Assembly: GCA_965202585.1 (NCBI GenBank)
Contig: OZ241827.1
Location: forward strand, 54,560,001-54,624,000
Length of the DNA: 64,000 bases
Direction: 5' to 3'
DNA from: Thalia democratica
Lineage: Eukaryota
Shown here: piece by piece, positions 717 to 15,475 of the stretch
Layout: every line of letters starts with the position of its first letter
Position numbering within the stretch: position 1 is the stretch's first letter
Position numbers and translations under genes: made by a program
The notes under the pieces: generated by a model
Seen by the model: only the letters and a program-made list of their open reading frames with translations
What the model was told of the DNA's origin: nothing
The model's database searches: none

Positions 717-2784
717 CAGGGTTGCCACACACTCAGGAAATCTCAGGGAATTTTCAAACTGTAGAAAATCTCAGGGAAACTCAGGGAATCTCAGGGAATT
801 TTGGCATTTTTCTTTTAATTCAGGGAAGTTTTGATTTTTTCTCTAAATTTCAGGGAGGTTTTTGAAAATCTCAGGGAAATTTTTTTTCTAGATCTAGAAT
901 GAGGTTTAGTTAATCCAGTTTCAATATTTTGTTCAAAAGTAGTAATTTTTATTATTTAAGTGGTTATTTAGATTTTTTTTAGCCTTGCGGCTAGTTCTTT
1001 AATATTCTTAGTATTAACATTGTAGTTTTTTTAAGTTTTAAATTTATATTTACTTAAGTAAAATCAAACAGTTTAGAGAAATGAAAGTTGTTGTTAACTA
1101 TTCATTGAAAAGTTCTAATAAACTTTTTATTTTTAGTTACTTATGTAGTTTCTTCTGTATTGTGCTGCTTCTACTTTAATTCAAGATTTGCTAAATCAAG
1201 GTAAAGTTTCTAACACTTTGTTCAAGTCATTTCACAATGAATGTAAACTTTTTATATTTGCTATAATAAAAAAAATTAAAACAAGAATGACTGTTGGTTT
1301 GAACTTTTTAAGAAGGGCTGCTGTTTTAAATCTGGCATGTCTAATTGAAATGGGTAAAGACCGTTGTGTCAGAAACTTTTTAAGGTTGGTCCAACAACTT
1401 GTCAGCATGAAGATACTAAAAGCAAAAGAAGGTGATGACAGCATTAATCAATACATTGATTTGTTAAGTTCTTCTAACACTCAAATACTTTTTGAAAATT
1501 TTCTTGAAAGAAGTCACAGTTTAGACACCTTTTATTTTGACACACTCGATATCCAAAGCAAGTATAAAGATTTAACAAGAGTCCTTGAGGCTGTTTTTGT
1601 GCTTAACAATGGCCAGGCAAGTGTTGAACGGGACTTTAGCTTAAATAAGGAAGTAATATCAACTAATATGGGAGAGATGACAATAAGGTCCCGAAGAATG
1701 ATCAAAGATCATCTATATGCAAACAGTCTAGAACCAAGCACAGTTGAACTAAGTTCTGAATTGTTAAAACTTGTAAAATCTTCTAGGGCCTAATATTTGG
1801 CATATCTTGAGCAACAGCGCTTTGCTAAAAATGTTCTAAATAAAGGTGATGCTTTGAGCAAGTTAGGAGAACAAAAAAGTAAACTTACAAAGCAACTCAA
1901 ATGTTTGAATGAAGACTATGACAAATATACTGCAGATGCCAACAAACAGTCTGATTTAGAAGCAATGAAAGAATTATTAGCAAGAGGAATAGCTGCTAAG
2001 GACAACGCAAATAAACTTGAAAATAAAATTAAAACTATTGATTTAGAAATTGCATACTTAAAAAAACAGTATTAAGATTTTTTTATTAGGTAATGTGAAA
2101 TTGTTTTAAAATCAAAATTATGTTTTCAGTTATTTAAAATATATTGTGTATGAACATCTAAAAGACATAAAAAAAAATTTAATTTTAGATTATTTTGTAT
2201 CAGTTGTTAGGTATTAAGTTGTACTTTGATATGAGATATTTCTTTAGCTATTTCTTTAAACTTTCTTTTTGCAAGTTTTTTTACAATAATGTTAAGCTTT
2301 TAAGTTTTATTTACTGCATTCAGAACAGTTGCTAGGAAAGACATACAAGTCATAATGAAGTTATTATGTATGCATTTAAGTGAGTTCTTCATGTGAAATT
2401 ATTATTATAGTATAATTAAATTTTGTCAATTAAAATGTCAAACAAATTAAACTTTATTCTTTTATGTAGAAAGTTAACTAACAAGTTTACACAAAGTTGT
2501 GCAAAAATTTAGTTTTTAATTTTTAATTGGTTTAAACCTTTTAAGATTGAGTTTTTGAAAACAGTTTTTTTCATAAATTTAATGCAGAAGCATACACATA
2601 CAACCTTCCTTTTATTATTAAAGAAGAAAAATGAGAATGAGGTATTAATAATTTGTGTTAGAAGAGAAAAAATTGTTTTTAAGATTTGAAAAATACTCAG
2701 GGAAACTCAGGGAAATTTAAGGTTACTCAGGGAAATTTTTGGTCACTCAGGGAAGATTTTTTGGCTTGAAGAGTGGCAACCCTG
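717..2784 (+). mobile_element. Internally deleted hAT-like DNA transposon with 6-bp TSD
   Basis: TIR CAGGGTTGCCAC (717) / GTGGCAACCCTG (ends 2784). TSD TTTGTA at 711-716 and 2785-2790. Clustered CTCAGGGAA subterminal motifs at both ends. Contains a transposase C-terminal remnant. Confidence 0.9.
1188..2075 (+). pseudogene. hAT-like transposase C-terminal remnant (dimerisation region plus coiled coil), one in-frame stop at 1791-1793
   Basis: ORFs 1188-1793 and 1797-2075 are in the same frame. Motif VLNNGQASVERDFSLNK resembles the hAT C-terminal 'xHGxAxVERxFS' signature. The N-terminal and catalytic parts are absent. Confidence 0.75.
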
Positions 2785-3193
2785 TTTGTAGTAAAAATAT
2801 ACTTAGGAAATTGTTTTATGAAGTGAATTGTTAGAAAATTTAATTATTGTTATTTTTTCTAAAAAGCCGAAATTACAAACAAAAAATCTAAAGCTGCAAA
2901 ATTATTTTATTAAGTAATTAATAAATACAGGATGACCACAAAATCAATTAAAACAAAAATAAAGTTTTTAGTAACACTTATCAATTAACTTCTTTTTATT
3001 AAGCTTATTGTTGGAAAGTTCTATGACCTTACTAGAGTTGCTATTTCTCAAAATTAACATTGTACTTGGTATTTTTTCTTTGTCTGTTATTTACTGTTTT
3101 TAATAATAATTCTCCCTGCAAATATAATTATAAAAACTCAGTTTTTTATAAGATTAAGTCCTTGTTGAAATGCTATTAAAATTTGAATACATA

Positions 3194-3580
3194 CAGGGTT
3201 GCCAAAAAACCTTGACTCCTGGAAAAACCTGGAATTGGACAATTTAGGCTAAAAAAAACTGAAAAAACATGGAATTTTGAACAAAAATCACTAAAAAATT
3301 TTGAAAAATCAGGAACTTTAAATAATTTTTACATGTTAAGTAGAAACATTTTGATTTGACAGAAAAAAATTTATCATATAGATAAAAAAATTTGTGATCA
3401 TCAAATTTTTTAAATTAAAATGCACATTTAAAGAAGCTTAAAGATATCTTTTCAATGTCGTTATGATAGTGAACACAGTTCTTACCTTGAATTTAATTCT
3501 AAGCTGAAAATAGACTCTAAAACTAAAACGTGTAATCTTAAAAATCTGGAAAAAGTTTGCCAAAACATTTGGCAACCCTG
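3194..3580 (-). mobile_element. MITE of the CAGGGTTGCC-end family
   Basis: TIR CAGGGTTGCCA / TGGCAACCCTG. TSD TACATA at 3188-3193 and 3581-3586. Its left end matches the reverse complement of the right end of the 52332-52690 copy. Confidence 0.9.
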
Positions 3581-3649
3581 TACATATATAAAGAAAGTAA
3601 ATACTACTTTAGTTAATTTTTTTTATCGGATAATATTTTAAAAGTTTAC

Positions 3650-12800: not shown

Positions 12801-13372
12801 GCGTTTATTTTTATTTTTTTACATAAATTGATATCTTCTTAGTAAAACTTAGCTGTAGTAATAAAAGATTCTATAAAAAAAATACAAGTTAATTTAATAA
12901 CATTTAGTAATTTTTTGTTAACTTTTACTATAACTATTATAAGTTTAACTTATCGTTATGAATAAAACTGACATATTGATTCATCGGACAAATATGTTAT
13001 GTAACACTAAAACGTTTAAGCCACGTTGGTAAAAGTAAATTACATTAAAAAAAGTTGTATAGAAAAAACTAATAAAGTTTGTTTCACTTACTTTGTATCG
13101 TTACAGTAAAGGAATATTCCAACTAAGCAGTTTTAAAAAAAAGTTTATGTATTTAATAACGCTTTTTAAACAATTTGAAAGTTCTAAACATTTTAAAAGG
13201 TCGTATTCTATTGTAAAAACCCTCAATATCAAAATTTGATAAGCAGCCTTATTCAAAATATATAAATAGGTTTTTAAGAGGATGCTGTACTATTTTTTTT
13301 CTTTTCTCTAAAACTTGTACAATAAAACTACAAGTAAACACTATTTTAGCTTTTTAAATATAGTATATAACG

Positions 13373-15365
13373 CACAGTGGGCTGGCAAGTGGCCATTGAC
13401 TATTTTCGCGACTAAGCAGTTAAAGCAAGATTTTTTTTAAATTGTTTAGAGCGGGGTTTCGTCTTTTAAAAACTGTTCTGTTTAAAGTATACTAAAAGTT
13501 ATGTAAGCTTAATTGTAGCCAAAGTTAGCTTTTTTTAAGTTTAAAAAAGCCTCGAAAAATGCTTAAACTTTTGTCAAAATTAAGGTCTACATCTACTGTT
13601 AAAAAACACATTAAAAGCTTTTATACAAACACTTTTTTTTTTTTTTTTTTCATTTCTTTGGTTTAGTGTTAATTGAAAAAAGTCAAAATTCTTTGAATAT
13701 TTAAATGTAAAAGTATATTATTTCTTTTTTAAAAAATCTTCTACTCTAGCGGAAAATTCATTGATGATTTTCTGGCAATTTAGGGTATTCTTCAGGGTTA
13801 ATTTTCTCAATTTACCACCTTAGAACCAACATAATATTTTTTTAAATAATTTAGTAAAAATGACAAGGAATCTATATACAAATTTACAGATAAATATATC
13901 ATGTGGAATATAACTATTTTTTTAGGTTTTTACAAGCGATATTTCTGTTTAAAAAATTGATATAATATCCTATCCCTGGTTTTTCACTATGACAAAAAAG
14001 ACCATTTTGTATGTTCTAGAAGGTTCTTAATGTGTATAGATTCACTTACTTTTGTTTACAGATCATTTAAGCTCCAAGAATGATGAGAACAGTTAGTATT
14101 GGTCAAAACATGGTAGCTTAGCATATGTTTTAATTATTGAAATAGTTTTTTTTACTATTTTAGCAAATTTAAGGTTTTGTAGTACTATTATTGAAGTTAT
14201 TATAGTAGTTTTTGTAAAAATAGTGTTTTTATTTATGATACAATATAGCCAGAGTATTGCATCTGATTAAGTAACATATTTTTTGTAGATTTATCACTAT
14301 AACTTATTCAAACCTAGCAGTAATATGGATAGTTTAACTAGCATCGAAATATACGAACTTTTCAAAAACCAAAAACTGTTCAAAAAAAAAGATTAATGTA
14401 GAGAAAAACTCAGTTTTATGTCAAAAAACAATGATGCTGGTCATGTCGGTTAAATGGATTCGCTTTACACCAACTGCGCATACTGTTCTTGCACATAGTG
14501 CTGAACTAATTGAGCAAAACAACGGTAGAGGTTTGCTAAACTACACCGAAAGTGGATTGGAAGCTAACAACAAGTTTCTAAGACAGTACAGAATGAGCTT
14601 TTTAAGGAAAACTTCTCAGTATGAAAATTTAACAGACTGTTTAAATCGATTATGGGACAAGAGTGACTACGATGTTAACAACACTTAAGACAGACTGAAT
14701 TGCACTTGTTGTAAAGAAGTTGGACATACTGTGCGAAGTTGTTTGCAGCTAAATGAAAAAATTTCATCATGTAGTTCAGAACGGGAAACGTTGTTACATA
14801 TGCTTTGTGCTACTGAATAGAGTGTTTTATTTATTTTAGAAACTTAATTTCAAAGAAGTTTTAAGAACTTACATATGACTTATATTTTCTAGTAAACTTA
14901 AAGTACTTTTTTTTAGTCACAGGCTAAATTATTTTGTTTTTTGCACTGTTTTGCAACGAATAAATGTTTTTATTGTTCAAAATGTTTAAGGTTTTTTTCT
15001 TTTGATAAACTAGTACAAATGTAACGTTATTAATAATACAAACTTTGATATACAAAGATCAGCCTTAAATTAGAAATAAACTGTATTTAGAGTATATTTT
15101 CACCCGGCTTGATATTGAAAATTCATTCATATTTAAACTAAAATGGGAGTAAATGTAACTATCTTGAGGGAGCCAATTATTATTTTCTTTTTTTTAAGTT
15201 TCTTTCTTTAAAGTTTCACTAGAAGTAAAAATTTTAACTATTTTTTAAATAAAAACAAACATTATTCTTATTGTAACACTAAGTGTAACTTTGAATTGTA
15301 TTATAATGATTTTTATGACAGTTTTATGTCAATGGCCGCTTGATCCCCGTTTTCAGCCCACTGTG
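13373..15365 (+). mobile_element. Internally deleted Transib (RAG1-core-like) DNA transposon
   Basis: Termini CACAGTGGGCTG / CAGCCCACTGTG plus a second conserved block CAAGYGGCCATTGAC at each end. Internal Transib-like transposase remnant. The 5-bp flanks match only partly (TAACG/TAATT). Confidence 0.85.
14392..14820 (+). pseudogene. Transib/RAG1-like transposase C-terminal remnant followed by a CCHC zinc knuckle
   Basis: INVEKNSVLCQKTMML...WIRFTPTAHTVLAH...TESGLEANNKFLRQYR...RKTSQYENLTDCLNRLWDKSD matches the Transib/RAG1 HxxxxH zinc ligands, the catalytic-Glu region and the RK motif. After a stop at 14686-14688 the frame continues with CTCCKEVGHTVRSC. Confidence 0.85.
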
Positions 15366-15475
15366 TAATTGATAAAAAATATAAATTCTATGTATTGTTT
15401 AACATTTTTTCAGTTACTGTTTACGCGGATGAAAGTAAACTTTACGTGAATTAAAAACCATGATATTAAACAGAA

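Follow-up and report, generated by a model that had tools for sequence, protein, structure and literature searches.

Kapitonov and Jurka (2005; PMC1131882, Fig. 4C) reported Transib families with 5′ and 3′ ends resembling RSS12 and RSS23 and that the 12/23 rule is derivable from Transib ends. The "Transib seed" hypothesis of Yakovenko et al. (2021) was built on this result, and the origin of the 12/23 rule of antibody genes is debated between this hypothesis and an origin from RAGL-A elements. Tao et al. (2022; PMC9435367) described asymmetric ends, a CTT1 or CCGHC tail, and an equivalent of the NBD for all Subgroup I Transibs, of which they named examples from Mnemiopsis, Pleurobrachia, and Hydra. 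The CCGHC motif was defined for invertebrate RAG1L (PMC10462144) and for Subgroup I Transibs (PMC9435367), and in the case of BbRAG1L, CTT* binds TR2 (PMC10462144). Martin et al. (2023) reported a 10-bp asymmetry in the ends of RAGL-A and listed asymmetric ends, CCGHC, and NBD-GRPR/K each as seen in Transibs.

In this study we analyzed a 1,993-bp Transib element at positions 13373 to 15365 of a 64,000-nucleotide stretch of Thalia democratica DNA (the window), which has a G+C content of 29% and is part of an 802-Mb assembly. The element is designated here as the window copy, and all its genomic copies as the Thalia Transib family. The family shares with the Subgroup I Transibs the absence of a RAG2-like gene, asymmetric bipartite ends, the CTT1/CCGHC tail, and a putatively NBD-equivalent N-terminal region; the candidate placement in this subgroup is based on two of these features, the asymmetric ends and the CTT1 tail, as read from the sequence. 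Neither the end sequences of the Thalia Transib nor its marine-animal host is named in the Transib literature cited here.

The insect elements Transib5, Transib2_AG, and TransibN1-3_AG (PMC1131882) likewise have a CAC-type heptamer, a 5-bp target duplication, and a spacer of ~12 bp at the 5′ end versus ~23 bp at the 3′ end, but their second block is A-rich and nonamer-like, whereas the Thalia Transib has the GC-containing sequence CAAGYGGCCATTGAC and a long spacer of 22 bp. With the V(D)J RSS and RAG1/RAG2 it has in common the heptamer CACAGTG, the spacing of 12 versus 22 to 23 bp, the 5-bp duplication on transposition, and the RAG1 fold. Unlike the V(D)J system, it lacks the nonamer ACAAAAACC, GRPR/K, and RAG2, its spacer is partly conserved beside the heptamer, and it is mobile DNA rather than a recombination system of the host. 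The RAGL-A element of Ptychodera flava (PflRAGL-A) and amphioxus ProtoRAG (RAGL-B) show a comparable heptamer, TR2-like stretch, spacer, inner block, and CCGHC tail, and in the case of PflRAGL-A also the 10-bp length asymmetry of the ends. However, both carry a RAG2-like gene, the spacing of ProtoRAG is 27/31, and PflRAGL-A has an AT-rich inner block and an NBD with GRPR/K. HzTransib of Helicoverpa zea (6pqn, 6pqx) matches the catalytic core best in both sequence and fold, but its ends are symmetric as described (PMC8289069) and its tail is of the CTT2 type (PMC9435367).

The window copy and its genomic family

The left end of the window copy begins with the heptamer CACAGTG (positions 13373 to 13379, plus strand), which is kept in all sister families and is followed by the 12-bp spacer GGCTGGCAAGTG and the 9-mer GCCATTGAC (13392 to 13400). 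The pentamer GGCTG adjoining the heptamer (13380 to 13384, plus strand) occupies a TR2-like position, and its G8, G9, and C10 are invariant among 12 ends of six families. The 9-mer is included in the second conserved block, CAAGTGGCCATTGAC (13386 to 13400, plus strand). At the right end, read as the reverse complement, the heptamer CACAGTG (15359 to 15365) is separated by a 22-bp spacer from the same 9-mer (15328 to 15336). The 3′ arm consists of the terminal 12 bp CACAGTGGGCTG, that is, the heptamer plus GGCTG (15354 to 15365, minus strand), a G-rich extra segment present in this arm only (AAAACGGGGAT; 15343 to 15353, minus strand), and the second conserved block (CAAGCGGCCATTGAC; 15328 to 15342, minus strand). 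The two arms thus have the terminal 12 bp and the 15-bp block CAAG[T/C]GGCCATTGAC in common, and the extra segment is the source of the 10-bp difference in length. A repeat search found the displaced 15-nt blocks to be 93% complementary, and they are the only copies of this motif within the window copy. Between the common blocks the right arm carries ~10 extra bases, with a register that is ambiguous by one base. The heptamer at both ends is CAC-type and identical to the V(D)J consensus, and the second block GCCATTGAC sits within the longer conserved sequence introduced above and differs from the A-rich RSS nonamer. This end layout is far beyond chance. An earlier note on this DNA had claimed RSS-like ends with spacers of 12 bp on the left and 22 bp on the right, a 15-bp block displaced by 10 bp or about one helical turn, and a 9-mer distinct from the RSS nonamer; coordinates and layout were confirmed, and the displacement and the distinctness of the 9-mer from the A-rich nonamer were borne out as well.

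As determined by BLAST, the 5′ part of the window copy (13373 to 14376, plus strand) corresponds with 91.5% identity to positions 1 to 1010 of the reference copy L034 described below and comprises an untranslated leader and the first codons. A remnant of the transposase start (MDSLTSIEIYELFKNQK...; 14325 to 14397, plus strand) is cut by the deletion junction at ~14376/14379. The last ~146 transposase codons form a second remnant (14380 to 14820, plus strand), which contains the third catalytic-residue motif, ESGLEANNK, an in-frame stop codon at 14686 to 14688, and the zinc-knuckle tail CX2CX3GHX4C (CTCCKEVGHTVRSC; 14701 to 14742, plus strand), which is of the CCGHC/CTT1 type according to the motif given in PMC10462144 and PMC9435367. 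As the window copy matches L034 in two parts, positions 1 to 1010 and 2646 to 3632, with reference positions 1011 to 2645 (1,635 bp) missing, it is a dead, non-autonomous internal-deletion derivative of a 3.6-kb high-copy Transib. The 5′ leader contains a run of ~20 T at 13633 to 13652, at which read-derived contigs are cut. A marine metatranscriptome contig of 996 nt (X14) covers positions 14428 to 15365 with 31 differences and stops exactly at the element boundary; it could reflect read-through or family transcription or, alternatively, carry-over of DNA into the library.

In read-derived contigs from two organisms, the breaks lie precisely at 13373 and 15365 and the flanks beyond them are diverse, and the summed read depth within the element is higher than in the flanks by a factor of a few hundred. 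An empty site in the second organism would give a contig that runs across the insertion point, but none was present among the read-derived contigs. The left flank TAACG (13368 to 13372), one half of the 5-bp duplication in degraded form, and the right flank TAATT (15366 to 15370, by direct reading) agree at three of five positions. This mismatch is larger than the decay predicted from a divergence of 6 to 8% and could be due to recombination between two copies or simply to mutation.

Dozens of full or split matches to the window copy were found elsewhere in the assembly. When up to two mismatches are allowed, the genome contains at least 222 matches to the 28-nt short-type end and at least 165 to the 38-nt long-type end, whereas the reversed control patterns of both ends gave none. 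The earlier note had proposed that the 12/22 asymmetry together with the target-site duplications of 5 bp be checked for invariance across copies. The asymmetry held throughout, since all 26 two-ended copies retrieved, representing 24 distinct insertions, had a short left and a long right arm with 12/22 spacing. The duplication was perfect in 16 of the 24 distinct complete copies but, as described above, is degraded in the window copy. The family thus moves by cut-and-paste transposition with 5-bp target duplications.

The longest coherent copy, L034 (G000:C5:55346816-55350447), spans 3,632 bp, shares its ends with the window copy, and is flanked by the duplication CGATA. It contains a single transposase frame, in which at least two frameshifts leave open pieces with lengths of 237 and 455 amino acids. 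The family copies are 91 to 96% identical to L034, and none of the scored copies has an intact autonomous gene; apart from L034, they are all shorter or contain stop codons. Judged from these sequences, the Thalia Transib family appears to be old and is probably no longer active in this assembly. Many independent breakpoints were observed among its deletion derivatives. A deletion from reference position 816-820 to 2456-2458 is common to the copies L004, L008, L011, L012, L026, and L028, whose target duplications differ; these copies form an amplified non-autonomous subfamily of ~1.97 kb. The recurrence of the breakpoint pair 816/2456 in five or more copies that differ in their target duplications shows that 12/22-ended derivatives were mobilized.

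Among the end matches listed (up to 100 of each type), the one candidate 12/12 element, with two facing short-type ends 1.3 kb apart on C9, was rejected after BLAST analysis, which identified one of these ends as a nested, inverted 5′-end fragment of 113 bp. The host of this fragment is a normal 12/22 copy with the duplication TAGGG. The fragment (L036:1321-1433; G000:C9:22852110-22852222) is embedded at reference position 2877/2884 of this other copy, an unrelated 3.2-kb insertion lies just downstream of it, and it may have been left behind by a nested insertion or by an event that was aborted. At L031:1636-4622 (G000:C1:73422860-73425846), another family copy is split by an insertion whose long open frames reach 317 amino acids and which looks like a retroelement. 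A search for a second Transib family in the same genome with the distant query P0038 (34 to 37% identity) recovered copies of the Thalia Transib only.

The transposase

The family gene encodes a RAG1-fold DDE enzyme of ~700 amino acids with a CX2CX3GHX4C tail. The 455-residue piece of L034 matched HzTransib (6pqn) with an E value of 6e-16 and amphioxus RAG1L (BbRAG1L, 6b40) with an E value of 2e-4, whereas the match to RAG1 was marginal. Full-length homologs of 704 to 715 amino acids with 53 to 60% identity were found in marine metagenomes and one other assembly, and a protein of Mnemiopsis leidyi (P0032, 37% identity) was among the homologs. The homologs carry a precomputed Pfam match to PF26100 (RAG1_RNase_H), and PF12940 was passed by the distant homolog P0038 only. 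For the window family, no Pfam RAG1 match was obtained at E values up to 0.1, and the only hits were weak zinc-knuckle matches. A genome search with PF12940 gave no match, and its control was silent too. An alignment of the transposases (A2) shows conservation of the catalytic motifs HDGLDGSG, MSMvDGK, and LEANNK and of the CCGHC/CTT1 tail, which reads CTYCKEVGHTARSC in L034.

The structure comparisons were performed with an AlphaFold model of the homolog P0007 (711 amino acids, mean pLDDT of 80). Residues 157 to 711 of the model were superimposed on HzTransib with a Z score of 30.9 (2.8 Å, 465 residues). The comparison with mouse RAG1 (residues 459 to 1008) gave a Z score of 29.8 (3.0 Å, 487 residues) and that with BbRAG1L a Z score of 26.8; fewer model residues were left unaligned versus RAG1 than versus HzTransib, which is at most an indirect hint of the alpha11-alpha12 region of the zinc-binding domain, a further Subgroup I feature (PMC9435367). 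The assignment to Transib made in the earlier note thus agrees with the sequence and fold matches to HzTransib and with the 5-bp duplications of the sister copies.

Since the alignment with HzTransib starts at model residue 157, HzTransib has no counterpart of the N-terminal region of ~156 residues, in which three helices are predicted between residues 99 and 150. A basic motif, (D/P)R(Q/T)QRRRL, precedes these helices, and the GRPR/K motif of the RAG1 NBD is absent. In the structure comparison, three of 50 alignment rows reached model residue 91, which was placed on RAG1 residues 393 to 412 (of the region 393 to 458) with an rmsd of ~10.5 Å. Based on this model, the N-terminal region may be NBD-like, although the assignment is weak.

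No RAG2-like gene is present in the element, as the 3,632-bp copy L034 holds only the transposase frame and thus a single gene in place of the convergent RAG1L and RAG2L pair of RAGL elements. The earlier note's suggestion that the element lacks a RAG2-like partner therefore stands. A genome-wide search with the RAG2 Pfam family PF03089 also gave no match, a weak negative given that the control was silent.

Ends of related families

Related ends were sought on contigs encoding transposase homologs, for which the identities given here refer to the Thalia Transib transposase. Both ends were found for three sister families from other marine assemblies, all with 12/22 spacing: L053 (P0007, 55%), which is flanked by the duplication CCCTA/CCCTA, L054 (P0005, 707 amino acids, 54%), and L063/L064 (P0016, 56%). 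In the case of L051 (P0003, 55%) and L058 (P0004, 54%), only the 5′ end with its 12-bp spacer was found, the 3′ end being off the contig; the contigs L049 to L052 and L055 to L058 are too short for both ends. Two further elements with both ends are located on L061. The outer one is short, encodes no transposase, and has 12/21 spacing. The inner one, whose homolog P0036 is 38% identical and whose encoded frame is 32% identical to P0007, has the duplication TGCAA/TGCAA and 15/5 spacing. Of the five related families for which both ends were available, four therefore showed the 10-bp offset, and the fifth (L061 outer) had an offset of 9 bp. Neither the surroundings of the Mnemiopsis gene (L059) nor L060 and L062 yielded convincing ends.

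In an alignment of the ends (A1), every 5′ end required a 10-column gap versus the four 3′ ends of the 12/22 type, and the 3′ arm of L061 outer was one base shorter than these. The heptamer, the GGC following it, and the core AAG...CAT of the inner block were conserved, whereas the sequence beyond the inner block was not conserved across families. A run of G within the extra 3′ segment was kept in all four 12/22 families, the segments of the three sister families being AGAGGGGGGGT, AGACAGGGGGT, and AAATGGGGTGT. In L061 inner, a member of a different family, the arms show perfect identity over 12 bp and 17 bp, split by a clean 10-bp insert, CTGGTACAGG, in the 5′ arm. As this element is a single copy, its insert may be a private indel. 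The two elements of L061 are nested Transibs in the marine assembly ERZ25066843: the 6,008-bp 15/5 element with TGCAA (L061:3061-9068) lies within the short element (L061:2238-9146), which has a length of ~900 bp and belongs to the same clade as the Thalia Transib family.

Possible working and meaning of the asymmetric ends

The Thalia Transib, with its single RAG1-fold gene, 5-bp duplications, and bipartite ends offset by one turn, very probably represents the published Subgroup I type. By analogy with the structures of RAG1, BbRAG1L, and HzTransib, the catalytic core and the CCGHC zinc-knuckle tail would hold on to the heptamer together with the GGCT(G/C) beside it, and a dimer of the NBD-like N-terminal regions would contact the inner block of both ends. 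Because the offset corresponds to one full turn, the inner blocks of the two ends would lie on one and the same helical face, and a tilted dimer, like the bridging NBD of RAG1, would favor a pair of one short and one long end. That this RAG2-less Transib clade enforces 12/22 pairing through an NBD-like N-terminal dimer on a non-A-rich inner block is a tentative proposal drawn from these analogies, and we consider it possible rather than probable.

Alternatively, the asymmetry could be a frozen accident: one arm would have acquired an indel in an ancestor, all families would have inherited it, and the transposase would tolerate it and have no pairing preference. The ends of the 12/22 families are homologous in alignment A1, which points to common ancestry, so that simple inheritance could account for part of the conservation. 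Moreover, most Transib families, including HzTransib, are described with symmetric ends (PMC8289069), and mouse RAG1 alone shows no preference for 12/23 over 12/12 pairs (PMC8355894). However, four families with transposases ~45% diverged keep the offset at exactly 10 bp, and a fifth element has 9 bp, although bases lying beyond the inner block vary freely across that span. The distant element L061 inner also has a clean 10-bp offset, with other spacings and with the long arm at the opposite end relative to the gene, and ProtoRAG, a relative, measurably prefers an asymmetric pair (PMC8289069). On this evidence we regard a frozen accident as rather unlikely.

The extra 3′ segment might instead be a separate G-rich recognition or regulatory element that marks the 3′ end, its length of one helical turn being incidental. 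The G-run that all four 12/22 families retain is in line with this idea, but L061 outer has no G-run at this place, L061 inner carries a different 10-bp insert on the other end, and the length of the segment is more strictly conserved than its sequence, all of which makes such a function improbable. It is highly improbable that the element is a RAG-like transposon with RAG1L and RAG2L instead of a Transib: the CCGHC tail and the asymmetric ends do occur in RAGL elements, but the 3.6-kb element has a single transposase frame, its best sequence match is HzTransib, and the genomic Pfam search for RAG2, weak as this negative is with its silent control, found none. The idea that the 10-bp difference is an indel private to the window copy, which the earlier note had named as a possible refutation, or a chance resemblance in this copy has practically no probability left, as after checking nothing but the mismatched flanks speaks for it, whereas the offset is fixed in the family (26/26 two-ended copies, 24 of them distinct, and at least 387 genomic ends) and conserved in the sister families of other assemblies.

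With regard to the proposed 12/22 pairing, the novelty implied by the earlier note was overstated, since ends resembling RSS12 and RSS23 (PMC1131882) and the asymmetric ends of Subgroup I (PMC9435367) had been reported before. The Thalia Transib fits the published description of Subgroup I and is therefore a new example and not a new principle. What it adds to the literature is modest and comprises the non-A-rich inner block, the exact 22-bp long spacer, the conservation over several marine families, and the 15/5 variant.

The published picture is thus unchanged by the Thalia Transib family. The clade provides an abundant multi-family example of a 10-bp asymmetry combined with a non-A-rich inner block, a putatively NBD-like region, and a CCGHC tail, and it constitutes a convenient natural set of substrates for asking whether a RAG2-less enzyme prefers asymmetric pairs. 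If a 12/22 rule operates here, the geometry at the heart of the 12/23 rule would be older than RAG2 and the A-rich nonamer, and the intact transposases of the sister families, such as the 711-residue P0007, would together with their natural ends represent a ready test system.
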